This document shows, piece by piece, positions 6,701 through 30,700 of a DNA stretch of 63,985 nucleotides. Position 1 is the stretch's first letter. Each line of letters starts with the position of its first letter. Source of the DNA: Gnetum montanum (taxonomy: Eukaryota > Plantae > Gnetophyta); contig MNCI01000472.1 of assembly GCA_015680685.1 (NCBI GenBank), forward strand, positions 677,863 to 741,847, written 5' to 3'. Under the pieces are notes generated by a model, which did no database searches, was not told the DNA's origin, and saw only the letters and a list, made by a program, of their open reading frames with translations. The position numbers and the translations under genes are program-made.

Positions 6701-9700
6701 AGCTATTCTGATTAAAGAAATAGCCAATAATCAAATAGCTAAGCTTAAAGAATTTCTTGAGAAAAAGGAACATAAGACATCAAAATTGCAGGATGAATTG
6801 AAAAGCTCTAGAGAAGAAAACAAGCAGCTCAAAGCAATGATTACTATCAAGGAATCATTGCTAAAAAATAAAGAGCAAGAAGCAGCTCAGATTGAAGAAA
6901 GCCTAGCTATGGTAAGCTCAGAATTAGAGCAGGTCAGGAAAGGTAAGGCTTCAGATTATTCACACCTAGCCCTACCAGGTTTCATTGAAATAATCACTAA
7001 AATAAATTATAGCAAGGAATGGATGAAGGATTGCGATGAGCGGGAAAATGAAGGCTGCTAGGCATGTGGATGGGGAAGCCTTGGGGCTCGACGAAGGTGG
7101 CAATGTCGTTGGGCACAGAGACCAAATGTCTAGTGCAGCTACACAAGGCCCAAGCAAGGGGATGTTTGGGGAGAGAATGGAAGTTGGAGAGGGAACAAGA
7201 GACAGTGGGGTTGGGAACGAGAACAGACCAACAATTAGGGTTCAGGTACAGATGGATGGAGAGGAAGATTTCAAGGCCTACTCAAGAGAGGGGACCACTA
7301 TGCAGCTCAAGGTGGGACACCCACTTGAGGAGGTGGTAAAAACCCTAGGGAGGAGCCTGTTGGGTAAATTCATGTCAGAAGGAGCATGCCTGCGAATGGA
7401 TCTTAATCAAGCAATGTGTCAAGGTGGCATGGGGTTTGGAGAATGTGAGGGTGCAAAGCCTCATAGATGATAGGTTGCTCTTCATTTTCTAGATGGAGGC
7501 TGATCAGGAGAGGGTGCTATTGGGGGGGAGGCGGGCCATGGTTTTACAAAGCCCATGGTTTGGCTCTGGCACCTTGGAGGCTGAGAGCTCACCGAGATGC
7601 AAGCTTGTTTGATCGAGCATCGATGTGGGATCGGATCTTGGACTTGCCCCTGGAGTACTGGGCATTGGAATTTTTGAAATCATTTGCTGGCCTATTCGGA
7701 GAACTCATAACATTTGATGCTTTCACTGCATTGATGGATAGGATGGGAGTGGAACTTGCACCTAGTTAATTAAGACACTATTGCTCAGCCCTGAGAGGTA
7801 GGGGGTTAGGAGTAATGAAGTTTGAAGATTTAGTTCTAATGGGTTACCAGACTCTGGTCAATCATATTACCCAGCTAAGGCATAACCAAGCACAATGGAT
7901 ATAGATCATCAAATCAAAATATACACAATGGGCAGCTGACCGTAGAGACTCACTCATTTGGAGAACAATATGTGCACATGTTATGAGTATGAATGCAATA
8001 GGAATGATGGGGGAGTCACCCCAAGATCTCATTAGATGGAAGTTCCCGACGATGAGAGGATGGTGTCATGTGGAAAGGTCGCTTGCCCGAAAAGATTGAA
8101 ATCTTTTTGTGGGTGATTAATCACAATGCATTGCCCGTGCATGCTATTTTGTAGGGTCAGGACCTTGGCATGATGGACACATGTCCGCTTTGCATGCAAG
8201 CCTCGAAAACCATTCAGCACTTCGTGTACAAGTGTATTTATCAAATTTAGGTCTAGTAGGAGTTAGCACGTTTGCATACTCTGCATATGCAGGATCTCAA
8301 TGGGGATTCAATGAGTGCTGCAATGCTTTTGAGTGCTGCAATGCTTTTGGGTGACCTAGAAGGGCCGAAACACGTTGATTTTTCATGGTCAACAGCTATC
8401 GACTCCGTTACAACTAGTGAGTCGAGGGAGTAGGCTTTGGTGTGAGGCAACAACTACAATGGGGCAGACACCCACATTCGAACCCACTTGTGAGGGGTTT
8501 CAGCAAAATGCAAAGTTATGGGAGCTAGTTCGAAGAGTCAGTTAGGCAAATGTGCTGCAACTGTTACGGGGGAACCCTAAGCTAGCTGATGACACATTTT
8601 TTTGTAACTAGCAAAGAGACGCCACAACATTCAAACAGGTCCACATCACGCTAACAAAAGCAACGCTAGTTGATTGTCTGGGTGTGTCGACGTCGAGGGA
8701 AATTACTCTCCCTCATGGTCAGGGTTTCTAGGACGCGTAGGTGTTTTCTATGAGGGCTATCCTAAAAATGGTGAGCAAGCAAATCCCGAGATCGACGCTA
8801 CATAGTTTTTGGCAAGAAGCAGTGGATTTGGTGGACCGCTACTTCGTCCAATTTGAAAATGTGTTGAAGTTGTAAAAGGTTCACTTTGCCTTTTTGAATT
8901 ATTTGAAATTTTGTCAACAAGTCAATTTGTCGAGGTTTTTCTGGTTGCATTAAGATTGTAGCATCATGGTCGGCATTCTAGATTAATTATTGCCCTTTGG
9001 AGATCAGCGACCCTGCTTGTGCTAAGGCCCCCCACGACCAAAGCCACAATTCACCTAGAGTTGGCATAGGGGAGTTGCAGTGGTGGATGTGGGGGTTTCG
9101 TCTACGACAAGGGATGAGGGGCCACAAAGGGGGTCTGGTGGACCGATGCCAGAGGAAGTACGAACAACCCAAGAGGGGCTGCAGGTTGCTCAGGCACAAA
9201 TTCAACATTTGGAGGCACAAAAAGTGCTATAGGAAATGGAGGCCGACCTTTCCAGGGAAAGCATGCATGTTTCAAAGGCCAAGGCAGTTGAAGAGGTAGC
9301 AAAGGCAGCCAAGCAGGCAAATAGGTACACTTGGGAAGCCAAGTGGAAGGCTCGAGAGCAAGAGTTTTCCTGACAACTCAACACGGTGGAGCACACACTC
9401 GTAAAGCATGTAAAAGAGATGTAGCGTGCATGGGATCTCAAGGAGTCGATGTTGAGGGCTACCCTAGAGGATTCTCTGCAAGAACAAGTTAGGGTGGAGC
9501 TGTTGCAAGCTAAGAAACATAATGCAAAAAGGGAGGAGTCCGACCTGGAGGAACGTGAGCAAGAATGGCAAGAGGCAACAGAGCTTCAGCGCCAAATCAA
9601 TTGTGTGCATGAGACTAGGGCTTAGATGTGGCTACACGAGGGGAAGTGTCCATACAAAGTTATGGATATTTGCAGTCAAACATCATGGGAGGTGCTCTGT

Positions 9701-12700
9701 CAACACATTCAACAAGCTACTACTAGGTTGCATCCGAATGGGAAAGATGCAACTGCGGAGCAAACACAGAAGGCTGAGGCTGCTAAAGAGTTTCAACAAG
9801 TTGCAACATTTGTTGATACTGAGCAACACTGGATGGCACTAGATAATATCCATGCCCAAGAATCGACTAGATGTCCTTGCAAGCGATTGCCTAAGTGGCT
9901 CTAGCTTTGGTTTGGGGAGTGGTAGTATAGTCATTGGGTGGGATACAAGGCTACCGTTGGCTCCATGACCTCTGTGTCCAATCTTGTGTATAGGGTGTTT
10001 GGGCTAGCATTGTGCATGTGCTAGTCTAGTTAACGATCATCGGTTACTGTAAGTATGGGGGTTTTGTTGTTGGGGAGTTGTTATTGCCAAGGGTGTTTGG
10101 TTTGGGGTGTGTTTGTGTTCATGGGTGGAAGGCAGGGAGTTTTACCTCCACCGTGATGAGATGGTTTTTCCACTTTTGTACATCTCACTATTTTGTTTTC
10201 ATTTTAATGCAAATTTTTCCTGACCTCTTCTCAAAACGATAAATTTTGAGGAAAATTCTCTATTGTTAAAAATATTCAATCACATTAAACTCAATTGTAC
10301 CAGCAAAAGCTATTTCGAGAAGTCCATGCCTTGATGGTACTGCAGACTAGCAACCACCTAAAATGAGTAATCATTAAGTGTGGTTTCTTGTAGTAGGGTC
10401 ATTCCCCTGTTCCAACAACAACTAAATCTTCACATCAACTATCCCCTAGGAGGATGCCACCCAACACTTGATAAGATCGAGTCTAGGGTGAGCCCCTACA
10501 GACAAAAACTTGTCAATCAAGCTCCTCTGCATAGTCTCCAAACCCTCAGACAAAAACCCTAGATTCAAGTGAAGGCATATTTGCGCTAGGCCACATCAAT
10601 ACCCCCTACCCCATGGTGCCAAACCCCAAAACCTATTGATCCTTCACCAGAGTCCTAGGATCACCCCATTTGAAAATGTTGTTCTTTACAACAACTGGTT
10701 CTCCTCTTACATCCATCCCTCCTACAGTAGTGTCGCAAGGTGCCCCCATGTAGGTGTTCTATCTTTTTGCTCATCACCATCATGCAAAGTGTCTTTTCCA
10801 CTCCCATTTGCACCTTTCCTAGCCACTCCAATTGCACTCACTAAACCATCCCGGTACAACTCACCATTCACCGAGCCACCCTCATTACTACCCTTGTTCA
10901 TTGTTCTACCCCCATTAGCACCACTAGTTGTCGTGTCACTCACCAAGCCACCCCCACCCACTACACAGTTCACCGACCCCTCTCCTAATGTTGTGTTGTG
11001 TTTTGGTGACATTTGGAAAAAAATTCTATGATGAGTATAACATTCTAAGCTAGTAAATTCACACTTTGTATTTCGATTGTTGGTAACTTCATTCTCTATA
11101 TTCTAGTTTGCTAGTAAATTCATACAATGAATCATATATGATTGAGCTACAAATATAGAAATGGTTATCATTATTGCGACACACACCTATGTTGTAGTAG
11201 TCAAGTTGTGTTTGATATAACAAAGTTATATATGATTTGTGCATGTGATGTGATGAGTGCAGGTATGATGTTGTTACCAAAGTGCATGTATTGTTAAGGC
11301 TTAAGCCAACCTAGTATTGTGCCTTGTTGTCTGGCTTTACAACAATGCATATAGCACTAGTTGCTTGTGATCAGTCAGCAGGTAGAGATAGCATGAGCTA
11401 TGTGGACCAGTTGGTGGTGAGGCACCCTAAAGGTGGTACAAGATTTACCCCCATTGTGATGCATCAGTGAGGCTCTTGTCTCAAGCCTCATCCTAGGAGT
11501 GGGAGAGCATAGGTGTACCTATCCCTACAACCGGTATGTGGCATAGGTGTGTTCATCTCTATGGCCAATCCTCCAAAAGGCTAGCAGTTGCAGATCATAG
11601 GTTGATGAACCCTAGTACTAATTGAGAAAATAAAAGACAAGTGCTTGTTAACAAATCCTCATGACAACTGATGCATAGATATGCTAGTTGTCACATGCAT
11701 TATGTATGCATGCTATGATGGTTATATCTAGTATTTATGTTCAAGCATATGAGTGGGTGTTATTGGAGTGTAATATGTGTGAGTCTATTGGTATTGATGT
11801 ATGATGTACTGATTATTGCCCATACTTGACGTGTTTGTGTTACGCTGATTGTTGCCATGCTTGATGTGTTTGTATTGTGATATGGAACACATTAGCATGA
11901 CTAACCTTTGATGCAAGATGCTCTTTATCCCCCTTTCTCTTCTCCAACTCAACATCAATCAACCATCAGGTAGGGGAAGTATAAAGGTTTCCACTTAGTT
12001 TATACTAACGATGTTTTATACAAGTAATGAAGTTGGAGACACCAATGAGCATTAGGGCTGATCAAGGGTATGGAGCTTGAATTTCCATGTATTTATGTAC
12101 ATTCATGTATATTCCAGCTTATGAGATGAGCATATTTGAATGTCTTTAGTAGGGGCAACTATGAAGTTGGACCCATAGGAAGTTGTAGCTTGATGAGATA
12201 ACATTTGTGAAATTATAGTTTTCTTTCATATGATGACTAGGTGTCCTAATCATGTTTTGAGAATTGTTTTAATTTATGTTTCTTCCTTTGTCTATTAATC
12301 GCCAATGTTTATGATTATTCATTAATCCAATCATTCATTAGTCAATTCTAGGCGCAACACCATCTTAGTTTTCAGGTACTAGGTGAGGTCTAATAAGAGC
12401 CAAGTAAGACGACTTGCTAACGCTTAACACAGACTAGACAATTATTGTTAGAAGGCATTTCATAATCTAAGTAGAAGAAAACAAAAGGAAGGGTTGACAA
12501 AATACAGCCTAGGATGAAATAGTTAACAAATGCATGATAGATTACAAAGTGACGAACATTCTAATCTCGGATCAACATAAATGATGACGTATTCTGTACT
12601 TTATTGTTTATATTTAATAGATAGCCCAAATTTTCTCAAAAAAAATCTTGGATTAACAAAAATGATGTAAGAGAATACTTTAAGGCTAACCCAACAATAA

Positions 12701-15700
12701 ATGGTTTAAGGTAATATGATAATGATTGAGGTCATGTGAACAATGATGCACACCAAAATATTCTTGTTTATCACCAAACCAAAGAAACCCAGCTCACAGA
12801 TTATTCATTTCCTCAAAAGAAAATAGTTGGACCACCTTCAATGTGAGTTGCAACCTTCTTTTTTTTTGGTGAAAAATGATCAAGCAATATTATTCCAAAA
12901 AAATAATGTACAAATGTACACAAAAGATCATCGACCGGAGTCAACATAACCCATCCATGTGACCCAACAATCACTTGCAACGTACCACATAATCACCTAC
13001 ACGCCTGCACAGTGCATCCCTCTCACACTGCCCGATGACCCTCACCCCAGATAGTCAACCCCTCTTCCCAAGAGTAGTATACATACATGACACATACACC
13101 CTAGGATACCCAAGACTCCAACACTACCTGTCCACATTTGTCCCCAAACTACTACATCCTACAATCTTGGCAAATTGCATCCTAGATCCCTGACTCTCAA
13201 CCCTAGCCGAGGCCTCTAAGGCATCAGTGCCAACCGTAGTCTGTTGTCCAGTCGATCCCAATCCAAGCACCATTCGCTAGTTCTCTACTCTAAGCTGCGC
13301 CAATCTCATCTAGTGCTCTAAAATCACCATCACCATCCACCTAAGGTCCTGCAGGCGTGATTCATTCGCTTCTCTTCAAGACTCCTGTTGCATGTTCTCC
13401 CACATGAGCTACCATAGTACCGGCTCCTCCCACTATGCCTACTCAACCGCCAAGCGACACTCTTCCAACAATTGTTCGTCCATGGCTGTAGATGTTTTTG
13501 CTCCCATGCCCTTCACCTCAAGGCCCTAGTTGTGTTGCACCTATGCCCTGGCAAACTGCCCTTGGCACTGCCTTCTTTCGTACACGATCGTTAGCGCCGG
13601 GTGAATGATCAGTACACCCCCATGCCATAGCACGAGGATCACTCTAGGGTGCTACCCCAACCACCTCCTACGTAGAGATTCCCAAAAAAAATGGGTCAAA
13701 TTTATCGGGGAGCCCTACCGAAGGTGCTTGAGAAAAGTGAAATGAACCCTCAACAATTTGTCAAGGTACCCGGATTGCACAAAATACCTCTCCACCAGGA
13801 GCGCTGCATCTCTCCAAACCCCTTGTAATCCAAACTTCTGGATGTACCTGCTAGCAATCCTGGGAATGTGTCCTATGAAGAACTCCCTCACATCATCCTA
13901 GGCCCTCACAACCAACACCACAATTTCCCTTGCATCCTCCACCCCCAACACAGCAACCAACATCTGCACCGTAATTTCAATCCTCTTGCCCATGTATTGT
14001 GTAGTGTCTCCCACCTAGTTGTCGTAGAACTGCTGAGTAGGCAAGTTCGGCTCTCCCTCCATGCACTTGAGCATCTCCACCCACCCCATCCATTCAACCA
14101 ACGCCCATAATTCAGGCAATCTAGAAAATTCTGTCCATGATGGTTCAAAAAGTAGGTGTTGCTCCATGGCCTCCTTCCACAGCCCACACACCTCTCTCAC
14201 CATTGTCGTGGCTGTAGGAAGTGGCTGAAACCTTCTATTTTAACAGCACAATTGGCTCCTTCCCTTCAAGGCCACTCAATGTTCCCCAAAGTAGAAAATT
14301 AATTTGTCCAATGGAAAACATAGAAAAAATGCAACTGACATATCATACTCAAATAGTTTTCTCATTTCTTAGCATTTCATGTAAGAGCCTTGAGTAAATC
14401 TTCATGAGTGATAAGTATGCTAATAGATCTATTACAGGTGTATAGCTTTGTTTAGGCATTTCTTAAGTCGTTAATGTTAATGATTGTTACACATAGGTAA
14501 GTCTGTAGCATGCTAAGTTAGTTGCCAGATAGGTTTGGAGTTTTTAAGCCATGGAATTCTTACCAAAAAATAGAAATCAAAAAACAAAAAACATTACTTC
14601 ATTGTATGAGAAAGATCAACATTATTTGAAATCGGAATGTAAGAAACTATACTTGGCGTGACAGTAATAAAATGTGCAATCAATGAGACATAAATAACTC
14701 AACTTTGAATGGTTTGATTTATGTCGAATCTTGGATGAACAGAGTCTTAGATGCCTAGACATTATCCCAGAATTCACTATCTCAACCTCATCCTCTCTTC
14801 TCCTTTTTTTGGAAAATGTTCCAGTTGCTTGCCTAGATATAAACAGGTAACTGACAGTTATCACTTTATAACAAGACTAAAAAATGGAACACATCGAACT
14901 GAAAATAAATACCTTAAGAAAACTTCACAGTCAGCATAAATGTCAACATCGAAGCAACTGAACTCCTGCTCTAATTCATTACTTAACAGAGCAAGAAGTC
15001 CACAGTTCTCTAACAGGAAAGAAACAAGCATGACATCGTTAAACAACACCATTCAAAGATGTATCATGACAATTTTTTATATTGCTGTATAGTAAAGACT
15101 CCGAAAATCACTGTTTCATGTTGCACACAATGACTACCATACCTCCAACATGACTAGTATCAGCCCAGACAAACAAGCATGCTTTTACTTGAGATGAACA
15201 TCCATAAAACAGTCGTCCCTTATTGAGCCCATCCTGGAAAAAAAATGAATCTTGAGCTAGCAAAGAAACATTAATGAATGCCTTTTGACTTCAATAAATA
15301 ATTACCATCCTACCTTTTTAACCAGTTGCAACTTTGCCAGTCCATGCTTGCAAGATGGCCTCTTTCTGTGAAGATGTGAGAGTAGACAGCTTGCTCTGTG
15401 GTACTCATCAGCTATATTGTATAACTAAATAAAGGAAACATACATGTTATCACTAGTAATAACACAAAGATATATCGTATAACAGATTATGCTTCTTCAG
15501 TAGCCAATATCTCCTCTCCGAAATTTTCATAACCAAAAAATGAAAAATAAAAACCATGCAAGTATTTTCATTCCAGTTTGCTTTCTTTTACTATGGCAGA
15601 AAATCAGAACCTTCAATTGCAAAATGAGGTACAACGTTTTATGCTTTGAAATCACCATCAATGTCTTTACAAAGACTTAGAACAAATTTTGGAGTATACA

Positions 15701-18700
15701 TGAACAATAAACACAAGAGAAAGTTTGTGAAGCTATTTATTGGAGTTCACATATCCATGTGCCATCAAGTAGATAGCTAGCCATAGAAAATAATCATCAA
15801 ATCCTTTGCGTACTCTAATAGTCAGCCCATATAGATGGGATAAAGGCACCAAGATGATGACAATATATGTATGAGGCAAAACGTAATGTGCCTATTAATG
15901 CAAATTGTTGTTTGGCTTTAAAGAAAAGGTAAAATTTTAAATAATATTTCTAAGGTTCTCACAATGAAAATTGTAAAATCATTATACAAAGACTTCTAAT
16001 CAAAATAGCAGTTGTAATCCTACAAATGCCTAAACTCTTACAAAGATCTGTGCTAGGAGAGGGGTGTTGTGTAGTGGGGAGGCAAAGTGATTTGGGGTTA
16101 GATGGTGTGAGGCTTTGTGCTAACATTTGGACTATAATCTAAATGTAATAGATGAACAACATGTATTATCAGAATGTTGTGAAATAGATTTCTTTACAAG
16201 AAAATGGTATATCTCTAGTCAGCCTTTATATGAACTATTTAAGAGACCAATGTTGATTCTAAGGAATTATAAGAATAAGTGCTCACATTACATGAGTATT
16301 GTACATATCTGTAGTACTCAAAATTTGTTGATATTAATGTATTTTGTATAACCTAATTTGTTTGACATATCCTTTGTGTCCATATAGATGTAATAAAATT
16401 TTAGTTTTGGTTTCAATAAATGCTCATATTGGATTAAATTTCATTTTCTATTTCAAGTATTTTATTTTCAAAATTGTATTGAATTTTAAATGCTAGCTTG
16501 GTGGGAAAATATGCTTAATGTACATTGTACAATGACTAAGAAAAACATGTATATGTAAATATTTGCTATTTTATTTCAATTTTTAGGTCTTGAGAAAAGC
16601 CTTATAAAGGATCATCACCTGGAGCTATAGCACTCATTCTGCTAAACAGGGCCCCAAGAGTACTAGTAGATAAGCAAAAACCTAACCCTTTTGAGTGGTT
16701 GCACCCAAGCTGAAACCCAGGTCTTTGACTTAAGAAAAACTTTATGATAAGCCTAAATTGGCTAGAACAATTATGTTTTGCTAATAAATGAAATTACCAA
16801 GGGTCAAGGGTCATCATCTGTAGGCTCAATGCTCTTCCGACCAAGTAGGGCCTCAGGAGGATCAATGGAAGAGCAAAAGCCTAATCTCTTTTCAAGTGGG
16901 TGTGTCATTGAAACACAAGTCTTACTACCTAAGAAATGAGCACCTTACTATCATTCCAAATGATGGTCCTTTAATAAATGAAATTACCAAACATGATAAA
17001 AAATTAAGAAAAATATATCTAGTGTTCTAGGAATTGTGGTGAAAGAACCATACCCATGAATCAAGATTGTTATGTATATCATAGTCATGTTATTTTCAAT
17101 TATGAAGGTATAAAATTCTATATTTAATTTGTGGTATATTTTTTTAGTTTTATTAAATAATAAAATATAAGTATCTCCTCCAAAGCTAAAGAATGATTAC
17201 TAGATAACCTTTCTAGGCTATAACATAATGTATGCAATAAGACATTTAGCCTACTGTTTCATAAGAAATTTGACCCTTGGATTTGAATCATGATTAATTT
17301 GTGTATCTTCTTAAGCCTGACTCATTTCTCTTTTTTTTCTTTTTTTTTCTTTTTTGAGAAAGTAGTCGGGATTATATTAATGAAAAACTCAAAATATGTT
17401 ACAAGAGATTACAAGTGGTGGGCCATCAGGAATGGCCCCTCCGAGAGAGGGGATGATCCCCAAATTATGCAATACCGTGCCCAAGACAGCAAAAACAACA
17501 GGGGGAGCCCCCCCAGTAAGCGAGGGGGCACCCCCAGGGACAAGGGAGGGTGCACCCCCACCCGCAGGAAGAGCCAAAACCAGTGAAGAAGACCGGGGGG
17601 CACCAACCCGATAGAGGACCACCCACTAAGGGTTCGTCGGCAGTCGTTGGCAGGCGCAGTTGGGGTGCTCCAGCTCATGGAGGATATCCAGAGTGTTCCA
17701 ATGATCCTCTATGTCCATGAAACTGGCCACCTATTGGATGCCCTGCATGGCCGACTCCCGTCTACTCCTGTCCACCTGTGAAGCTCCTGCATCTGGGTGG
17801 TAGCGCGCCGAAGTTCGGCGGATATGTCGTCTAAGTTCCGCCCAGGAGCTCTCACAGCTGATGCCAAGAATGAGGTACGGGCATCGCCCCTCTCTTAGCC
17901 ATTGTCGGGCGTTATGCCCGTGGGCGCGGTCAAGTTGTCTCTATCGTTGGTCCTCCTCCTCCTGAAGCCGCTCCTGCTCCGCCCGCTCCGCCCACTCACA
18001 TCGTCTCTGGGCCTCCTCCTCTTGGGTTAATTCTTCCCACACTTGGGCCTTGATTTCGTCAATGAGGTGAGCCCTTGCAGCCTCAACCATGAGCTCCTGC
18101 TGCCTAACCCGTTCCTGCTCGTGCTCAGTGACCTGGGCTTCCAGGTCAGCCCGAGCCTGCGCGAGGGTTTCATTCCATTTGGCTTCCCATTCTTTCCTCT
18201 CTACCTCCCGGGCTTCGTCTACCGCCTTCTGCGTGGCCTACCGAAGCTCCTCATTCCAGTTCCTCTAGCCAGATGTCTCTGGTGGGGGGGAAGCCGATTT
18301 GGCAGGACGTTCAGGGGAGCGCTGCTCCCGCGGGGTCCTCTGACCCCGTGTAACGGAGAAACCCCAATGGGGCCAATCGCCCCCCCGCCCGGGCACCACC
18401 GTAGTGTCCTGTGGCCTAGCCGAGGGGGGGCATTCCAAAGAGACCCCCCACAGGGGGGCAGAGGACGAGGTGTGATGCCCCCCCTTTGCCCCCTGCCACA
18501 GTGCCAAAATTAAACCAAAGTGGCGGCCGCGGCGCTTGAGCTTAAGGGCCTCCTTAAAAAAGTGGGGGAGGTTGACCTAGCTACCCAACTTGAGGCAGCA
18601 TAGGAAAGCGAAGTGTAGGCCCTGCAATTTGGAGCCGTTGCTAGACTAGACGAAGAATCGGTCCACCAGATCTGCACCCCGGGCCCATAGGTGTGGCAGG

Positions 18701-21700
18701 GAAGATTTGGGTACTTGTCTGCTCTTGGTTCAAGGAACAGGCCCATCAAAGAACATTTCAACATCCTGGAGGCCACAGGTGGAGGGCAAAATGATCTATC
18801 CAGCAATCGAGGCCCCCAAACAGCTGGCAATCGAAGATTCTGTAATCCAGATTTCACGCCCACGAAAGAAGGTACAATCGTTGACCCAATTAGAGAAAAA
18901 CGCGGCGTCTGCCAAATTTGGATCCCCGACCAGCCGTTGCAGAGGGTCAGACCAACCGCACTGGGCCACCATCTGCCAGAGCGCCTCGTCCTCCTGGAAC
19001 ACGGCGCAGTCCAACTCGAAAGTGGGCGTGATTCCCATCGTCGTCTCGATTTCCTTCCACGCGGTGAGAGCCTGGGAGACCAGCCGCTGCAGAGGGGGGC
19101 GCTGTTGCTGCCGGAAAACAGTGTTATTCCATGCCTTCCACGCTACTCATAAAAGTAGTGTGGCCCAAGAGTCACCCGTGAGGCGCCTCAAGGGGGGCAT
19201 CGCCGCCACACGCCACATGGCGCGCATGCAAGGGCAATCAACCGCGAAGTGCTGCACCGTTTCAACAGCAGCATCACATGTAGGACACGTGTTGCTGTTT
19301 AGTATTCCGCGCCGCTGCAGCAAGGCCCGTACGGGCAATGCATCGCGCTTAAACAGCCACAGGAAGATTTTGATTTTTTCAGGCAACCGCCCCTGCCAGA
19401 TCCGCAGCCAACCATCAAGTTGGGGGTATTTGGCCATCAGAAGGGCTCGTGGCTCGAGGCCCCCCATCCCAAGGCCTGCATCACACGTGTGTGCCGGCAC
19501 AATGCCTGCCAGGGCCTAGAGTCCCGCGCCCCCGTTTCCTAGCGTAGATATTTGGCATTCATGATGCGGATCCATGGGATCGGTTCTCTATGTGGGCACG
19601 AAAACCGAAGCACTAACCGTTGTTATCCCATCATCAGCTCGTCCTCGAATGACGTGATGCCCAACCCACCCGTGCTTCGGGGGCGCACCACCCGTTCCCA
19701 ACGGACCAAATGGAATTTGTGCCCCCCCTTGCCCCCCTCCCAGACGAAGCTACGGATCAGCGTGTTAACCGCATTCATGACCACGTTTGGGGGGGTGGCA
19801 ACGGCAACCACGAAACGAGCAATTGGAAAAATCTAAGGTGTTAATCCATTGTTGTATAAAAAGGTAATCACCTGAAGACTCAATGCAATCCATTGCTATA
19901 TAACTATAGGATTAATGTTAGTTCTATGTCTAATATGTTTGGCATTTTATTAATTGCTAGTGTTGTACTTCATCTCATTTTTCTTTTTTCTTTTTTTTTT
20001 GTAAGAAAAGGTCAAGAATATATTACAAGCAAAAAATAATTCTAAGCATTGAAGGAAAAGGATCCCCAAACATTAGGGGGTGGGGCTGGGGCTGGGGGAC
20101 AAAAGACACCCTCTTGAACAAAGGGGAAGATTCCCAAAGACAAAAAAGTGGAGAAGGACCCTTATCCATTCACAAATACAATAGAGGAAACAAAAATTGG
20201 CCCGTCCCAAGGCCCCATGCATACAAAGCTCAATTTCAAAACCAAAACATAAAAACCCAAAACAACAAACAAGGCATACATGCTTGAACCAAAGGTAGAT
20301 AGTCATTATCCTCCCTTTGGATGACCCGCTAGATGGGGATAGTGATAGGGGAGGAGACCCTGCACTACCCATCCCCACGCCCCCCTCCCCCACCCCCCAA
20401 CCCCTGAAAAGATTTCCAACTAGAACCACTATAGGACCTCCACAATCGCCTATGGTTCATGGACCACAATCCCCCCATCAGAGATACAGGGGATCATTTT
20501 GACATCTTTTGCAACATTTCCCATAGCAAAAAAGAATTTTGTATTCTTATCCCCATCCTTCAACAATTTGGCCCATGACCTTTCCTTCCAATATGACTCT
20601 TCTTCCCTTGAAAGCTCCTAGAGCTAGACCAACAATTCATGTTCCTCCTCCTCCAAAGGTTCCCCTTGTTCCTACCTTCTCTGTATGTGCAACAATGTTT
20701 ATTGCAAAATTGAGCAGCTCACTTTGAAAGAGTACTTGTCCTCTTTACGAATCTTTCAAATCCCATGTTTAAGCAAGGACAAGCCACACTTAAGAAAGTC
20801 ATGTGGGTCTTCCTATGTTGGGTAGTAGCCCCAAATATCCCTCACAAGTTTATGCAGCCAACCTTTTGTTAGCCATGTGCACTCAAATCTAAACTAGGAC
20901 GAGGCAATTTCAAATGTGTGTTGGAAAGAACAAAGTAGGGCTCTATGATCAAATGCTCTAGCTGAAACAAACTTGTCAATAAGACTTACCTACATTGTTT
21001 GTATCCCCTCCGACAAGGCCCTATCCATCTAAAGATAGAGCTTCCCTGAAACATGAGAAACTGCCTCAATGCCTACCATCTGAACAAGCCAACTGGTCGA
21101 ACCAGCTAAGAGTTGCCCACCCAACAAGACCCCACGCCACCTATGGTCATGCCCTCTTTATGCACATGGCCAACAACCTTCTTCTAGTCCTCTACTCCTC
21201 CCACTTCCTCCACATTATCCCTCATCTTTGCTGCCCTAGTGGGCTTTGCATCGCTACCACCCTTCCCACTAGTGCCGCCTCCCTTACCATTGTTGACACT
21301 AGTCAAACCAAACCCATCACACCCACAACTCATCTTTTTGAATGGGTTTAGGCTAATGTTCATATTATCACCTTGGCTAATGCATTTTTCATTACAGTAG
21401 ATATGTTTAGATGATTTGTATTGGTAATGTTGCTAGGAAATATAGAATCTTAATTCACTATTGAATAAATATACAATCAATGTTTGAAATGTTTCATATC
21501 TCATCCAACAAGCTCTTCATTTGAACAAGTCTGTTCATAAACATTATGTAATTTTTTATTCAATAACTGAACCATGATCATTGTATCATTAATAATGTTA
21601 TTGTGAATAGAGGTGTAGACGACACCACAATTATTATATTTTCTTTGTATTCCAATTTGCAATTATCTAGCTTATGAAGAATGTGCTTTTCTACATTTTG

Positions 21701-24700
21701 ATCTTCTAAATGGTTGTTTATGTATTGCTCTACATGCCTCAAAAATTGGCCCGAGTTTATTTCATTTTACATTTATTGTGCACCTTGGATGCATAGTGAA
21801 TTTTGTTACATTTATTGTGCACCTTGGATGCATAGTGAATTCTATGATGTGTCGATTGTCATATTGGAAAACTTTCCAAGCAAAATCCTTAGACACCTGT
21901 TTGAATGTTGTACCATTTTATGCTTATAATTACTTAGGCCAAAATTAATTGTTGCTAATGTTAGTTTGATTGCATTATCACTATGACATTATTAAACATT
22001 TGCATAAGTGCATTTGAACTTATAAAAAGAAAATGTTGTTTCTTTCTAGAAGGATTTTAAATATGCAAAACAACAAAATGCTCTCAGCATCTTAACCAAG
22101 CTAATCCTCACTAGTAGTCAGCAACCATGCATTCACTACACAGCTCATTATAGTTCCCCTATGAAAAAACATGAGTATGGAGGTCTTCCCATGACTCCTA
22201 AGAACTTCGTATCTGTCAAGCATGCATTCTTGGAAAATTAAGAAAACAAATCCTTTCAACAAGCACATGACTTTGAATCACAAATAAAATTTCCTACATG
22301 TAAAGTCATGATACAATCTTCCATTTAATAGGTTGAAAAAATAAATTTTATTTTTTACGTAGAAGATCTGTCCCTATGAACAATCATTTTTTTGAGAGAA
22401 TATTCGGGAGTATATTATTGAGAAAGAAAAAATATAGTACAGGAGATTACAAATCATGGGTCATCAGCAATGGCCCTCAATAGATGGGGGAAAAAGCCCC
22501 TAAGTCACAAAATTTTAGCACCCCAACAACCATGCTAACCTCAAGAAACAGAACCAAAAAACAAACCAAAAACGAGGGGGGGCCAACCCCCCCCCCCCCC
22601 GGGGGGGCCCCCCCCCCCCCAGCCCAAGGGGAGGGGGCACCAGAAACAAGGGAAAATAACAGGGCGGGGGGCGGGGGGCAAAAGGACGAGGAAAGCGGTG
22701 ACGTCCAGGGGAAGCAAGCGTCGTCCACCCTCCAAGACACCCCCTCCTAGGGGTTCATCGACAGCCGACGGTAGGCATAGTGTGGGTGCTCCAGCTCATG
22801 GAGAAGGTCCAACGTGTTACGGTGGTCTTCCGTGTCCATGAAACTAGCAACCTGCTGGATACCCTGCATTGCCGACTCCCGCCTATTCCGGTCCATCGGC
22901 GAAGCTCCCCCATCAAGGTGAAAATGCACCGAGGTTTGGCAAATATGGTGCCTGAGCTCCCCCCAGAAGCTTTCGCAACTGATTCCTAGGATGAGGTACG
23001 GGCAATGCCCCCCTCTAAGCCATTGTCGAGCACTGTGCTCGTGTGCCCTATCAAGCTACCATTACCGTTGCTCCTCCTCCTCCTGTAAGCGTTCATGCTC
23101 CGCTCGCTTCGCCTCTTTGCGTTCTCTTTGGGCCGCATCCTTCTGCAGCAGTTCTTCCCGTACTTGGGCCCGAATTTCATCCACTAACCGGGCCCGGGCA
23201 GCATCGGCCATGAGATCGTATTGCCTCACCCACTCATGCTCCCGCTCGTGAAACTGGGCCTCCAAATCAACCCGGGCCTATGCAAGGGCTTCATTCCATT
23301 TGGCCTCCCACTCCCGTCTTTTAGCTTCACATGCCTCGACAACGGCTCTCTGTGTGGCCTCCCGCAGCTCTTCGTGCCAGTTCATGCTGCGGTCGAAGGT
23401 TTCTGATGGGGATGAAACTGATTTGCCGAGGCCAGCGGGGGGGCACCGTTCCCATTGAGTCCGCTGCCCTGCGTGAAGGTTGTAGCCGATAGGGTCCAAC
23501 GGTTCCCCTGGCTAGACAAGACCGTAGGGCCTGGGGGGTTAGCAGGGGGGCAAGCAAGGGGGCCCCCGCGGGGGGCAAATGACAATGGGTGTTGCCCCCC
23601 CCCCCTCTACCCCCCACCACAATGCTAAAATTAACCCTGAATGGCAGCCTCGCCTTTTAAGCAGGAGGGCTTCCAAGAAAAAGAGAAGGAGGTTAACCTG
23701 GCAGCCCAATTTTAGGCAACGCAGAAACACAAAATGTAGGCCCTAGAGCTTGGATCCGTTGCCAGACTAGACAAAAAATCTGTCCACCAAATCTGCTGCC
23801 CGAGCCCAGAGACAAGGAAGAGAAGATCGGGGCACCTGTCGACTTCGTGTACGTGGCACAGGCCCTTCGGAAAATAGTTCTGCATCCTGCAGACCACAGG
23901 TAGACAACAGGATGACCTCACCGATGACCTGGACCCCCAGACAGCTGGCGATTGAGGATTCTATGATGAGAATCTCGCACCCTCGAAAAAAGGTCCGGTC
24001 GTTGCTCCATTTGGTAAAGAAAGCGTCGTTTGCCAAATCTGGGTCCCCGACCAACCGCTGTAGAGGGTCACACCAGCCGCACTATGTCACCATCTGCCAA
24101 AGCTCCTCGTCATCCTGAAACGCAATGCAATCCAGTTCAAATGTTGGCGTGATTCCCATTGCCGCCTCAATTTCTTTCCACACACAGAGAGCTTGGAAAA
24201 CTAGCCGAGGGTGGAGCCTTTCCTAATGAAACACAATGTGGTTTCTTGCTTTCCACACTACCCATAAAAGTAGCGTGGCCCAAGAATCGCCGATGAGGCG
24301 CATCGAGGGGGTTGCCACCACCACAAGCCACGTGGCACGCATGTATGTACATTCATGAGTGAAGTGTTGAACTGTCTCGGGCTCGACGCCACAACAGGGA
24401 TAGGTGTCGTTCTGCATGAGCCCGCGCCAACATAGGAACTTGCGCACAGGCAACACGTTCATCTGTATCAACCAGAGGAAGATCTTCATCTTCTTAGGGA
24501 GCCACCCCCTCCAAATCTGCTACCAACCAACCACCTAGGGATACTTGGCTATCAGTAGATTGCATGACTCGAGATTCAACCACCCCTGGGTCTACATCGC
24601 CCATGCGTGCCAGCAAAGCGCTTGCCAGGGTCTAGAATCCCGCACCTCCGCCTCCCAACGTTGATACTTTGCATTCATGATACGAATCCACTGGATCGGT

Positions 24701-27700
24701 TCCCCGTGCAGGCGCATAAACCGAAGTATCAACCGTTGTTGTCCCAGCATCAATTCGTCCTTGAAGGATGTGATGCCCAACCCCCCCCCCCCCCCCCCCC
24801 CCCCCCCCNNNNNNNNNNNNNNNNNNNNNNNNNNNNNNNNNNNNNNNNNNNNNNNNNNNNNNNNNNNNNNNNNNNNNNNNNNNNNNNNNNNNNNNNNNNN
24901 NNNNNNNNNNNNNNNNNNNNNNNNNNNNNNNNNNNNNNNNNNNNNNNNNNNNNNNNNNNNNNNNNNNTTTGCAACTCAAGAAACGATTTGCCCAATGGCC
25001 CATCCTTCTCTCAACTTTCTCCATCAGTGACCCCCACGAAATGTTCCACCCCCATTGGTAGAGTGGAATGCCCAGGTAAGTGTCTTTGCCTATCCCGAGC
25101 AAGATATTCAGGATTTGCACCACCCAGCCTTTAACCTGCTCATCAACATTAATGAAATGTGCTGAAGATTTAGTCTGATTAATCTCCAACCCCAACTCAG
25201 CTGCCAAACAGGACAGAGCGATGTTGATGCATCGTGCCTGTGGGACCGCTGCCCGACTAAGCAACATTGTGTCATCCGCATAGTGTTCAACCCAACATGC
25301 CACCCCCACAATGTCCAAGCCATCCACCCCGAATGTGCTGCAATAGTTTTGCATTAGGCCCATAGCAATGATAAAAAGTAGGGGCAAAAGCGGGTCCCCC
25401 TTTCGTAGCCCCCTTCCTGGGGAGGATAGACCCCACAGTCACCCCCCCCCCACGTCAAAAGAGAAACCGGCTAAAGACTGCATGTGAATGCAAAGCTGGA
25501 TGAACTGCTAGTCAAAGCCCTTCTGTTGCATGATGGACTTCAAGGCTTCCCAGCTACATGAGCTGAACCAGGTGGCAACCTTGGTGCCAAACCATCCATC
25601 ATGGATAGTTGTAGGAGACTTTAACCAACGCCTTCACACTTGGGAGAAGTCTGGGGGGCTACCCCCCCCCCCCTCCACCTGATACGCAAGAGTTCGAAAA
25701 CTTTCTGGCAACCTACTCCCTGGTGGACTTACCCATTGAGAACTGCCAATTCACATGGAGCAATCAAAGGAAAGGCTCGAACCATGTCCTTTCCCGAATT
25801 GATCGGGTCTGCATCAGCTCCGACCTCCTCCTCCATTCCATCGTCCATGTTTCGGGGCAGGAGAGAGTCACCTCGGACCACTGCTTGCTGGTCTGTTTGC
25901 TTGGGCCAGAAAAGCCCCAGGCCCCACGGTCTTTCCGCTTTGAGGCCACCTGGTTAGCCAAGCCATGGTTGAGGCCGTTGGTTGAGGATATTTGGGCAAA
26001 TTACCGGCCTGGCCAAGGTGATCCCCGAAACTTCCTTAAGGAAGCTTTGCTTCGACTAAAGTGGGCCATCCGGGCGCTCCCAGTGGAGGATAAATTTTCC
26101 TTTAGGACGGGTCAGAAGACACTCAGGGATCAGCTTGGTCGAATCCAGGCCCAATAGGAGGCTGGGGAAGACTTACACAAGGAGGAACAGCACATTTTAC
26201 GTCAACTTCAAAGCCTTGACTTAGAAGAAGAGACATATTGGCGGCAACGCTCCCAGGTCAGATGGCTCTAGGAAGTGGACACGCAAACAAGATTTTTCTT
26301 TGCCATGGCTAAGACACGTGGGGGGGGGGGGGCCAACCACGCTGTCTATGCAACCAGGAGGGAGAGATCATTGACGACCCGCAGAAAATCGCAAACAAGC
26401 TATCGCAGTACTGGGGGAGGATCTTGGCCAAATGATCCACCAGGCCCATCTCGATCCACGTGGCACAGGTGCTGAACAAGGGGGACAACATGCAGCTGCT
26501 GGCCCCCTTTTCGTGGCAGGAACTCACGACCACTATCAACAGCATGCTGGGAGGAAAGGTGCCTGGTCCTGACAGCTGGAGCCTTGAGTTCTTTAAGACA
26601 TTCATGGATATTGTGGAACCCAATATCCTAGATGCGTTCAATCTCATGTTGGCCAAGAGGCAGGTCCAGAGGGAGCTCAACTGCTCCTGCATTGTGTGCA
26701 TCCCAAAACAATCAGACGCACACTGCCCTGAACACTTCCACCCTATCGAAGTGTGCAACGTGCTTATTCGGCTCTTCTCCAAACTACTGGTGCATAGGCT
26801 AGTGCCACTCATGCCCAAACTTGTGGGAATAAACCAGGCTGGCTTTATGCAGGGCTGGACCCTTCAGGACCAACTTCTCCTCGTGCAAGAGGTCCTTCAT
26901 TCACTTCGAACTTCGGGTTTCCCTGGGCTTTGCCTCAAACTATGAACAATCATTAAGATCATTGAATATTTACAATAAGCAAGGACCCTATATATGTCAA
27001 AAAATAATAGATAGTGGAGGAGGGGGGAGGTAGCCATGCATCGGTGGGTGGGGGTGGGGCGTGGGGAGGTAAGGGATACGCAACGAGGGCTATTGGAGGG
27101 GGGTGCAAGGGGTGAGACGTCTCAACTCCATGAGCTGCAAGGGGTGAGACTCGACAGGATTTGGGGGGGTGGGTGCCATTGCTAGGCGGGCCACATAGCT
27201 AGAGCTTTGGGAGGAACAATGGCACCAATGGAAGGAAGAGTTCCACTAGGAGTAGGAGCTTTGGGAGGAAAGATGGCACCAATGGGAGGAAAAGTTCCAC
27301 TAGGAGCAGGAGCTTTGGGAGTAGCAACAAGCACACTCCGTCCGTGAGGTGATGAGGGAGGAGCAGATACGACAAGACCTTGAGAAGGCAATGGCATAGC
27401 AAGAGATTAAGGTGGAGCTCCGGAAGTAAGTCAAGGAGGAGTTGTAGGAAGAGGCCAAGCAACGGGAAGAGGAGGAGTGAGAGGCTGAGGTGTGCCGACT
27501 GCCTACACCTTAGGAAGAGGAGGAGGAGGCCTAGATCAAGCAACAATTGGATCAGGCACATGCTGATGGGGTGCGGGCCTAGTTGTGCCAAGGTCGTCAC
27601 CCCTACGTTATTCTAAATATCAACCGGAATGTGCCTTGGTTGATGCTGCGGCAACACATTCGCAAGGAGGGGAAGAAGTTGCACCCTATTGGGATGCCAC

Positions 27701-30700
27701 GCTAAAGGCAAAAGCCTTCAAGAACTTTCAATAGGCAATGGCTTTTGTGGACTCTAAACAACACAGGGCTATTCTTGATGCCATTCATAGACAGGAAAGG
27801 ACACTCTAGCCATGTACAAGGCTGCCATACCGACTCTGAGCAATAGGGGTGGCAAGGTCCCTTGGGGACTGTTGATTTTTGTCTCCCCCTCTCTATAGGG
27901 AGGCCTTTGGTGTTTGTGTTTTCTGTTTGTCTTGGCCTTGTCTCCCCCTTTCTGGAGGGGGATTTTTGTTGGTGGACATGGGGGATTTCATGGCCGGTTT
28001 TGCAGGGTTGTTTAGTTGGGGTGTTTTTTCTTTGGGCGGTGGAACGCTCCCTCCCCTCTCCTTTTTTTCTGGGAGGAAGCTCAATTGTAAATTTTTGTAA
28101 AATTTTGATTTAATATATCCCAAATTTCTCCAAAAAAAAGTAATAGAAGAGATTAGCATTATCATTGATTTTGATGGCTTATACAATGGAACTTTCATCA
28201 TGTCTCTTGGTTGATGTTTGCAATCCCCAGAAAATTTCAAATGAACTTTAAATTTTATCTCATAATATTTTTTTTCTTTTTTTACCCTTCAAAAGAAATA
28301 GAAAGGAAAGAACAACTTCTTTAACAGAAATAGCATTCACTTCAGCATATAAAAGTTATATGAGAATTCAGTTTATAAAACCTTTTAACAAGATAAATAC
28401 GAACGTACAATTAGATTTATTTCTTCATAGATTGCTGAAATCATAATGTTCCGATAAGAAGAAAAAGAAGAAAACTTGTTGGGAATAAGAACTGTCCGCA
28501 GCTTCTGTGATGAAAAACCAACAGGAAAAGAAAGGTGTTTCTCAAAATGATTGAAGTCCATTTTTGGTGGTTGAAACCGTGCCATCTTTCCCGCGCCTTT
28601 TCTTAGAATATTACAGGCAACAACACTTTTACAGTTTCCTTCATTGCATGCAAAAACGGTAGCCTCTGTCGTGTTGCATTCTGTAATAGTAACTCTCTGG
28701 ATTAAAATGTTGGGGATTAAAGCCATCTTTTCATGAGTTACAACCAACATTCAACAATGATACTATCCATGCAAATCATCCACTTACCACTTTCTTTCAT
28801 GAGCGGTTGTCTACTTTCATTTATTGCATCCTCCAATTTTGAAATACTTGTATCTAAATCACCAGTTTCTATTTCAGCAATGGTTGGTCTTCTTAAATTT
28901 GTAAGAATTTGATTCACTGTCAAGAAACAGGTGATGGTAGCACAATTGAATCCTTTTATCCGAGTAAAAACTCTTGGAAATTAAGTTTTAAAGTTACAAT
29001 CATTTGTTTTTTCAATGTAAATTTCAAAATAAAGGAAAGTAAAGCTATAAAGCCATAAGAATTAAAATCAAACACATCAAATATTTGAAATTAAAGATAC
29101 GTAGCTTAATTTTGAATTTTGCATGTATAAATGTGAAAGGCGATTCAGATGAATTATGTAAGCCTCGTTGAAATCTCATAGGATGACAAGACATTCGAAG
29201 GACATCCAACATCATATAAGAAATGATGTATTTTATATAATATTTTAAAGGCCATTGAATGGATACAGAGACAACTGAAAAGTACTGAGCATTATCCTTT
29301 AAACTTTGGAGATTCCAGTTTAAAAGTAGTGGCTGCACTAATGCCAACCTCTGGCTAAGCATTTACAGTAAAAGGTAAAGCTTTGAGTACGAATGTTTCA
29401 CCTGCACTTAAATATCACTTATATTATTTTCAGAGAGAATTTCAGGAAGGTTTATTATAATGCTGAGAAGTTACAAGGACACCAATAAAAAAAGCTAATC
29501 CCCAGGATCAATTTTGGAGGAGACCCTGCAGAGTCACAGGAGTAGGTCCACACAAACGGGCCATAGCACTTTCACAATTCAAGTACATCGTCCCAACCCC
29601 TGCCCCTTGTCCAGAATCATCAGTTTAAGAAGTACCCCAAATGCTATTAATGGTCCCCCAGTATCCCTGGGCTAGAGTTGCAGGCTACTATCGTTATTTA
29701 AGTTTTAGCTTTCCCTTGTTGATCGATGCTATCATTTATCTCTATGACAAGAATGCGACCTGTTCCTCAGACATTAGGCAAGTCAAGGAAGAGAAAACTC
29801 CACATTTTTATACATACTATGGGAAGAACTATTGCTAGCTTTATTTGTCATTATATTCATGAAATTATAAAGATAGAAGAAATAAGATTGAGGCAGGATG
29901 GTCAAAATGAAGACAAACTAGTATTGTGCTATGTCATAAAAAAATCCCAATAAAACTGAAGGGAAAATTTTACAAGAAAATAATAAAGTATGCTATCTTA
30001 TAACATGTTGAATGTTGGGTAGTACAAAAGAGGCATGAACAAGAAGTCAATATGGCAGAAATCCCAATGCTTAGACAGATTTTAAAATATTAAAAGAAGA
30101 GATAAAATGCACAATATACACATTCAAATAAGACTTGGAGTGGCTTTTATTTTAGATACATTGTAGGAATAGCATCATAGATGGCTTGGGCATGTGCAAA
30201 GAAAATCATATAATGAGCCTATAAAAAAATGTTGCTACCATACTGTTCTAGGAAAGCCACAGAAATAAAGACTAGAAAAGAGATGGGAAAAAACAATTCA
30301 TGAGGATATGAAAAAATTGCAAATAAACAAAGATCTAGCTCTTCATAGACATGAATGGCAAAAAAGAACTCATAGAGCCAACCCCATTTGGTTGGATCAA
30401 CGCTAGGATGATGATGATGATGACTATTCCTCAATGCTTAGAGTCCAAGGGAGACAATTTCAAATTTTGTACATACCATGGGAGGACCATCTCTGTTTTT
30501 TTCCTGAATGAGAGGATCCTGCCAATTTTTGTATTATTGTAATTGTGCTTTTAAATTTCATATATAAGATAATATCCCAGCCTTTCCCCCAAGAAAAGAG
30601 TTTGATAACTTTCTTTATTTATGTAATTTTCCTAGCCTAAAATTGTATTTATTTATTTTTAAAAAATTTTGTATGGGGTAAATGTAAACGCAAGTTGATG

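Follow-up and report, generated by a model that had tools for sequence, protein, structure and literature searches.

A plant L1-type LINE family of Gnetum montanum whose ORF2 probably ends in a divergent J-domain

The stretch of DNA analyzed here, 63,985 nucleotides (nt) of the Gnetum montanum contig MNCI01000472.1 and hereafter called the window, carries on its minus strand, from 17326 to ~19825, a dead, 5'-truncated insertion of a plant L1-type long interspersed nuclear element (LINE), which we call copy A. A sequence-only reading of this insertion had proposed that the second open reading frame (ORF2) of the element, the one encoding the reverse transcriptase (RT), is fused in frame to a C-terminal J-domain. 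The explanation that best accounts for our results, and in which we have fair confidence, is that ORF2 of the living family continues past the zf-RVT domain in frame to a J-domain, through which the element would make use of Hsp70. The extension of ORF2 would comprise an accessory domain of ~215 amino acids (aa), a Pro-rich linker, a charged helix of ~105 aa and the J-domain, followed by the stop codon, the 3' untranslated region (3'UTR) and the poly(A).

Translation of the minus strand of copy A gives one frame of 1875 bases, from 19500 to 17626, with nine internal stops and zero frameshifts, which bears out the earlier view that the frame is broken by stops and not by indels. The stops at 19147, 18796, 18265 and 17626, described as lying in one frame, are spaced by 351, 531 and 639 bases, each divisible by 3, and the peptide given for the minus-strand translation of 17626-19500 was reproduced letter for letter, from CPYLILGIS to ARYHPDAGAS and then QRLPTNP and the stop. 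The frame had been said to begin in zf-RVT at about 19465; zf-RVT and the final TAG do share one frame, but its phase matches 19500 and 19464, not 19465. As described, the J tail directly precedes the 3'UTR and poly(A) of the LINE, with the TAG at 17626-17628, ~270 bases of 3'UTR and an A-rich run at 17326-17355. At the other end, the DNA word depth of ~2500-3600 drops to ~25-34 past 19822, and many reads and contigs diverge from the window sequence at 19825, placing the 5' truncation at ~19825. An ORF at 19623-19811 lies in a different frame, giving one frameshift 5' of the 1875-base frame. The parts of copy A are as follows.

19501-19825, minus strand: remnant between RT and zf-RVT (DNA word depth and ORF positions)
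19213-19437, minus strand: zf-RVT, zinc-binding domain of LINE ORF2 (PF13966, E 1.8e-17, residues 22-96 of the piece 19150-19500)
18496-19146, minus strand: accessory domain, fold without assignment (tblastn and alignment), conserved in copies A, B, C, E, F and I
18268-18495, minus strand: Pro/Gly/Ser-rich variable linker, the least conserved part, into which the indels between copies fall
17944-18264, minus strand: charged E/R/K/Q-rich helical segment (composition), conserved in copies A to D
17941-17943, minus strand: in-frame TAG ahead of the J part (translation), CAG in most reads
17629-17883, minus strand: J-domain (helices I-IV) and short C-terminal tail with C-x-C (Pfam, profiles, hhalign, structure model, Ka/Ks)
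17791-17799, minus strand: His-Pro-Asp (HPD) codons CAC CCA GAT, in the loop joining helices II and III (translation)
17626-17628, minus strand: terminal stop of the extended ORF2, at an aligned codon shared with the stops of copies B and C
17326-17625, minus strand: 3'UTR, family terminal motif and A-rich tail (17326-17355) (sequence and sense RNA pile-up)

The J-domain of copy A is interrupted by one TAG, at 17731-17733 inside helix III, and its charged segment seems, by its sequence, to resemble a coiled coil.

The J-like tail is no product of chance: it was found by tblastn of pieces to be present eight times in the window, in copy A and seven more, and every time it is the last coding part ahead of a 3'UTR ending in TCTCAAAA (A, B and C have this motif itself, E a similar one). 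We compared the copies singly, piece by piece between their stops, as natural sequences. The eight tails, all located by tblastn, are as follows.

17629-17940, minus strand: J tail of copy A
22750-23055, minus strand: J tail of copy B, 102 aa, no stop, HLD for HPD; the sequence used for folding with AlphaFold2 (AF2)
50068-50373, minus strand: J tail of copy C with HPD; zf-RVT and RT also kept (52449-53111; Pfam)
33126-33447, plus strand: charged helix of copy D running into its J tail without a stop; HLD; frameshift past the loop
9626-9901, plus strand: J tail of copy E, 92 aa, uninterrupted, HPN; ~33% identical to A; a diverged sublineage
36934-37200, plus strand: J tail of copy F, a diverged sublineage, HPD, with a helix III typical of J-domains (DnaJ E 0.064, profile positions 26-57)
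27583-27702, plus strand: short J fragment of copy G, HPI
31248-31499, plus strand: J fragment of copy H, HPN

Copies A to D are ~70-75% identical to one another in protein, and E to H are 25-45% identical to A. Where 5' sequence survives, the order of parts is constant: zf-RVT, accessory domain, Pro-rich linker, charged helix and J part. The copies in the window are all 5'-truncated, copy C breaking off within RT at ~53111.

The identification of this material as LINE ORF2 holds, given that the tail comes after zf-RVT, that sister copies carry RVT_1 and that the nearest RT relatives include plant LINE fragments. Pfam matched zf-RVT in copies A (1.8e-17) and C (1e-13), and RVT_1, 5' of the same tails, in C (4.5e-19) and F (3.4e-14). 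Among the matches of the RT piece, those with names come from plant LINEs, as fragments (Brassica, Vitis "TX1-like", Gossypium, Linum and others), and the best-scoring are metagenome or assembly fragments; identity is 30-43% across all of the matches. The zf-RVT domain fits plant L1 elements, a putative clade membership that rests on the RT and zf-RVT region.

We hold with strong confidence that the tail is a J-domain homologue, genuine but divergent. Homology is accepted because, even though no test is strong by itself, all of them agree and none points elsewhere: the J-domain pattern noted earlier in the tail is recovered by Pfam, by a profile against the PDB, by a profile against all proteins, by hhalign and by fold matches. 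DnaJ is the sole Pfam match in four of the eight tails (E 9.3e-5, 0.064, 0.072 and 0.19). The best of these belongs to the copy A piece 17734-17940 (PF00226, 22.9 bits, profile positions 2-37 of 63), and the matching pieces cover different halves of the profile, helices I-II with HPD in A, C and D, and HPD with helix III in F. A profile of the eight tails searched against the PDB sequences gave J-domains in 28 of the top 30 matches. When a 12-row tail profile that included C-terminal pieces was searched against 1.84 billion proteins, two matches were obtained at E<=1e-3 (1.4e-4 and 7.3e-4, E-values for the whole library), and both are DnaJ proteins (Pfam 1e-121 and 1e-14), one with six DnaJ domains and the other with DnaJ and thioredoxin. 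Aligned by hhalign to the matched J-domains, the tail profile reached a probability of 96.6% in an alignment of 65 columns that extends through helices III and IV.

Models of the fold point the same way. The AF2 model of tail B, with a predicted local distance difference test (pLDDT) score of 72, has helices at residues 19-23, 31-47, 54-73 and 76-89, that is, four helices with a long pair of helices II and III, as in the J-domain fold, and the H-L-D loop sits between helices II (31-47) and III (54-73). In a Foldseek search with this model ~40 of 50 rows were J-domains. The VIA structure search, which is independent of Foldseek and was run over 48,161 chains, gave the J-domain 1wjz as its top match (Z 6.3, root mean square deviation 3.7, 85 residues), the J-domain 6rzy at Z 5.7 (69/70 residues), and HscB, P58IPK, RAC/zuotin and other J-domains within the top ten. 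The fold evidence is thus consistent with a J-domain, though not decisive.

Several of these same results weigh against a J-domain and have to be set beside the others. The PF00226 match expected from the sequence-only reading was obtained for copy A but stays below the gathering score of 27.8 bits, on a piece shortened by the stop in helix III, and the uninterrupted tails B (HLD) and E (HPN) give no DnaJ match in Pfam on their own. The E-values of the PDB profile search are 0.04-1, the hhalign partners were picked by the same tail profile and hence are not independent, Foldseek returned nothing at E<=1e-3 for tail B (E-values >=0.3), and a VIA Z of 5-6 is no higher than the noise that helical models give. 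The tail profile also met no LINE-J protein among the 1.84 billion representatives, a test that rests on eight decayed copies and read pile-ups. In addition, an ESM-Atlas feature search of the J tail gave no J-domain lead, its best score of 0.88 falling on clusters without names.

Such results would be expected if the tail were instead a lineage-specific helical domain at the C-terminus of ORF2, J-like by chance or too diverged to work with Hsp70. The sequence matches are all weak (Pfam below gathering, PDB E >=0.04, Foldseek E >=0.3), small helical bundles score middling Z with many folds, HPD is missing in five of the eight copies, and the tail departs from canonical J-domains by its extras, namely a Trp within helix II, a Cys preceding helix I and the C-x-C tail. 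Chance likeness does not sit well, however, with an unbiased search of 1.84 billion proteins that returned J-domain proteins only, with PDB sequence and Foldseek lists that are almost wholly J-domains, or with an alignment that spans four helices and puts H-P-D exactly in the II-III loop. HPD was moreover lost by transitions in dead copies (by two changes in G) and kept between A and F, lineages that are ~25% identical. We consider this alternative unlikely and regard the tail as a J-domain.

The distribution of HPD enters the same weighing. The motif is retained in A, C and F and replaced by HLD (CTT) in B and D, HPN (AAT) in E and H and HPI (ATT) in G, so that only three of the eight copies keep it. 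A single transition separates HPD from the codons of B, D, E and H, and two changes separate it from those of G. With ~four transition-sensitive non-synonymous sites in CAC CCN GAY, each hit at ~13%, the expected loss of HPD is ~40% per copy. Because HPD survives in lineages only ~25% identical, its sequence argues for an ancestral HPD in the tail. Copies B and D have the identical Leu codon CTT for the Pro of HPD yet differ at ~59% of the synonymous sites of the J region; the shared codon could reflect two independent C-to-T events or a sublineage that was active with HLD, and it counts among the points on the other side.

Cysteines flank the J-domain on both sides. A Cys immediately before helix I (G-x-C-P-Y; 17881-17883 in A) is present in seven of the eight copies, and the C-x-C past helix IV (17629-17670 in A) reads CAC in A, C and D, CPC in E and CHC in F, copy B having YAY at this position, which is G-to-A decay. 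Because both ends of a J-domain adjoin each other, the Cys before helix I and the C-x-C may form a lineage-specific zinc or disulfide clamp.

We are likewise confident that the J part is fused in frame to ORF2. A single frame extends from zf-RVT to the last codon in copies A (1875 nt) and B (1743 nt), and from the accessory domain to the end of the J tail in E (8360-9901) and F (36415-37200). In D the charged helix leads into the J part without meeting a stop, and C has a frameshift in the linker. The frame of ORF2 is the frame of the J part in every copy without an indel, and no conserved Met lies ahead of the J part in any copy.

Against the fusion stands a stop that four copies share ahead of the J part: at the aligned codon 20 residues N-terminal to the Cys of CPY, A and C have TAG, B has TAA and F also has a stop. 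The codon is CAA in D and E and encodes Lys in G and Cys in H. If this junction stop were ancestral and functional, the J part would be a separate downstream ORF3 or would be reached by read-through or reinitiation. The TAG/TAA swap is the pattern of a conserved stop, and D alone is free of stops over the 22 codons leading into the J part. The A-like subfamily, however, reads CAG at this codon: when reads were placed on copy A at 85% likeness, position 17943 was A>G, turning TAG into CAG, in 41 of 42 RNA reads and ~90% of the DNA depth. The other stops of copy A are resolved in the same manner by DNA contigs and RNA reads, the family majority having TGG at 19147, GAG at 18798 and C for the first T of the stop at 18579, 18267, 18240 and 17943.

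The number of stops that coincide between copies also speaks for decay. Nearly all internal stops are TAG opposite CAG in sister copies, and C-to-T change at methylated CHG sites is expected in plant repeats. In A, B and C alike, 42 codons are prone to become stops, of which 12-17% are hit per copy; by chance 2.0 double hits are expected and 2 were observed, and 0.1 triple hits are expected against 1 observed. The stop at 17941-17943 is a decay product, because D and E have CAA there, CAG is in the majority among the reads and the Gln codon is a C-to-T hot spot. More generally, the stops of copy A are private C-to-T decay, mostly from CAG to TAG. A conserved stop or frameshift splitting the J part from ORF2 had been named as a threat to the fusion; the shared stop reads as decay. 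With the Lys in G and the Cys in H at that codon, the lack of a conserved ATG before the J part and the frame shared with ORF2 in the indel-free copies, a separate ORF3 or a functional junction stop appears quite improbable, and an ORF2 extended in frame through the J-domain is the reading we keep. A further point against that reading is that no intact copy, endonuclease or ORF1 of this LINE was found within the window.

To assess selection on the tail, copies A to D were aligned as DNA, counted in the frame of A and analyzed by the Nei-Gojobori method. The J region has a Ka/Ks of ~0.09-0.14, with proportions of non-synonymous differences (pN) of 0.13-0.21 and of synonymous differences (pS) of 0.59-0.78. 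For the other parts we obtained 0.18-0.29 (zf-RVT), 0.07-0.11 (accessory domain), 0.05-0.16 (charged helix) and 0.34-0.51 (linker). Ka/Ks over the J region is thus as low as, or below, that of zf-RVT, the accessory domain and the charged helix, and the linker is looser. Identity in the J region of the same copies is 0.77-0.89 at first codon positions, 0.78-0.83 at second and 0.49-0.58 at third, and a chi-square test of third positions against the other two gives p values of 1e-4 to 6e-8. The J tail has evolved as protein under purifying selection. The low Ka/Ks together with the codon-position bias imply that the sublineages diverged to synonymous saturation while active, with the J part held as protein.

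The family is abundant, and its polyadenylated sense transcripts include the J coding part, the reads being those of the family at large. DNA word depth over the tail is 10^3 to 10^4, rising toward the 3' end and highest over the J part, a 3' bias of the kind that LINEs typically show. In oligo-dT RNA-seq, reads from copies 85-95% like A span the entire tail, with a depth of ~5-50 per strand class that dips at the variable linker and in the 3'UTR. The reads of a strand-specific, 3'-biased library are confined to 17300-17995 and to the sense orientation.

The 3'UTR after the J stop measures ~250-340 nt in A, B, C and E. An A-rich tail follows the terminal motif in A, B and C, and E has a similar motif and no clear A-run. 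The middle of the 3'UTR is hypervariable and rich in G/C homopolymers (17474-17560 in A, 22580-22650 in B): in copy A its DNA word depth falls to ~45, from thousands in the flanking sequence, and in copy B it has runs of 13-14 G and 7 C. The last ~60 bases are well conserved among A, B and C and may, from this conservation, be the end recognized by the RT.

The accessory domain between zf-RVT and the linker lies at the following positions.

Accessory domain, by alignment: 18496-19146 (A), 50916-51671 (C), 8360-8950 (E), 13718-14239 (I) and 36415-36597 (F)

It has no Pfam match in the pieces of A, B, C, E and F, even at E<=10, and no relatives were found with a 252-aa single piece or a 12-row profile in the protein libraries. 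At 47, the pLDDT of its AF2 model is too poor for a structure search. A likeness to Transposase_32/PMD/ATHILA ORF-1 (PF20167, PF03078) was considered and rejected, as no Pfam match appears at E<=10; the ESM-Atlas lead to land-plant Transposase_32/ATHILA ORF-1 clusters scores 0.80, which is chance level. Of all the parts, this domain is the most strongly constrained (Ka/Ks 0.07-0.11).

The window as a whole is a LINE graveyard, with at least nine 5'-truncated copies, from at least three deeply diverged sublineages of the one J-tailed family, on both strands of 64 kb. The copies form GC-rich islands of 50-60% GC against a background of ~32-36%, and related species also carry parts of this stretch. 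Copy F (36601-36696) has neither the Pro-rich linker nor the C-terminal half of the accessory domain, its first accessory block leading almost directly, in frame, into the charged helix; its short layout is probably either a deletion variant or the architecture of a shorter sublineage. Runs of N, which are assembly gaps, lie inside copies B (24809-24967) and C (52162-52272), between RT and zf-RVT, and suggest that the assembler collapsed or broke at the repeat.

The proteins encoded by LINE ORF2 are scarce, large and difficult to fold, and to our knowledge work on whether they depend on chaperones has to date dealt only with trans-acting host factors. The architecture, frame, homology, purifying selection, high copy number and sense transcription of the extended ORF2 are observed; by analogy with other J-domains, we infer Hsp70 binding and a part for the J-domain in retrotransposition. 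With helix II and HPD, the J-domain would dock ATP-bound cytosolic Hsp70 of the host and set off hydrolysis of the ATP, and Hsp70 would then clamp the ORF2 protein (~1500 aa), or the ribonucleoprotein (RNP), that bears the J-domain. Such a built-in co-chaperone could help, in cis, with the folding, RNA loading or remodelling of a large RT protein. The ORF2 protein is proposed as the client because the protein that bears a fused J-domain is the simplest client. That the J-domain was kept by selection across diverged, transcribed sublineages would point strongly to use of Hsp70 by the element itself. We advance more tentatively, and with some doubt, the stronger proposal that the J-domain is essential in cis, loading Hsp70 on the nascent RT or RNP or on a host silencing or restriction complex, that the success of this LINE, with its thousands of copies, depends on chaperone hijack, and that this is the first retrotransposon with a co-chaperone of its own.

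Plant J-proteins sit in methyl-DNA-reader complexes, and from this comes the idea that a real and fused J-domain might serve to counter host silencing, via methyl-DNA-reader partners or by dismantling a restriction complex with Hsp70. The long charged helix and the accessory domain adjoin the J part and could bind such partners. The sequence has, however, no part resembling a SUVH- or MBD-binding one, the accessory domain is without detectable relatives, and the simplest client of a cis-fused J-domain is its own carrier protein, so that silencing seems a very improbable target, and action on the ORF2 protein or its RNP is the mechanism we favor.

No LINE or other retrotransposon with a J-domain was found in a search of the full-text literature, the repeat libraries Repbase, Dfam and REXdb being outside its scope; the sequence-only reading likewise knew of no described LINE with this architecture. 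The donor gene of the LINE J-domain could not be identified. As a module, the J-domain would be of a new kind among those captured by non-LTR elements, which include RNase H, helicase, esterase and others. For annotation, DnaJ-like matches in this genome may be LINE tails rather than genes, and call for caution.

Among known systems, plant L1 LINEs share with this family the succession of RVT_1 and zf-RVT, the poly(A) end, the 5' truncation and the gain of a module at the C-terminus of ORF2. Some L1-clade LINEs of plants are cited as carrying RNase H after RT (Smyshlyaev et al. 2013, cited in PMC5203782), and a 503-genome L1 survey gives RNase H as the sole extra domain of plant ORF2 and does not contain the word DnaJ (PMC5203782). 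In the Gnetum family, unlike in plant L1 elements with RNase H, the module consists of the accessory domain, the charged helix and the J-domain, and the RT is 30-43% identical to its matches. The nearest precedent for C-terminal capture is found in the R1 and TRAS LINEs of insects, which gained a viral SF1 helicase domain at the C-terminus of ORF2 (PMC4686597, PMC5563155). Here too a foreign domain appears to have been captured at the C-terminus of ORF2 and kept through the evolution of the family, whereas the module is one for an Hsp70 co-chaperone instead of a helicase, in another host kingdom and another LINE clade.

The hepadnavirus polymerase can serve as a model for the mechanism proposed, since this RT is remodelled by the Hsp70 system before it binds its template RNA; hepadnaviral RT is listed as needing Hsc70/Hsp40 to bind RNA (Stahl et al. 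2007; Beck and Nassal 2003, listed in PMC7356129). Hepadnaviruses rely on a host J-protein that acts in trans, whereas the LINE would have its own built into the RT protein. Similar to class III (DNAJC-type) J-proteins, the LINE protein has a lone HPD J-domain on unrelated domains, with no G/F or zinc-finger region; the DNAJC-type proteins differ in being without endonuclease, RT and zf-RVT, and the LINE J-domain adds the Cys before helix I and the C-x-C tail. The large and small T antigens of polyomaviruses offer a case of a selfish element that encodes its own J-domain: according to PMC7356129, the J-domain of SV40 T antigen works with Hsp70 and its mutation abolishes the link to Hsp70. The polyomavirus J-domain is N-terminal, belongs to an animal DNA virus and acts on Rb-E2F, whereas that of the LINE is C-terminal, on the RT protein of a plant retrotransposon, and its use of Hsp70 is proposed by analogy. 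With this distinction, the J tail of the Gnetum LINE family would be a plant parallel to the J-domains of polyomaviruses.

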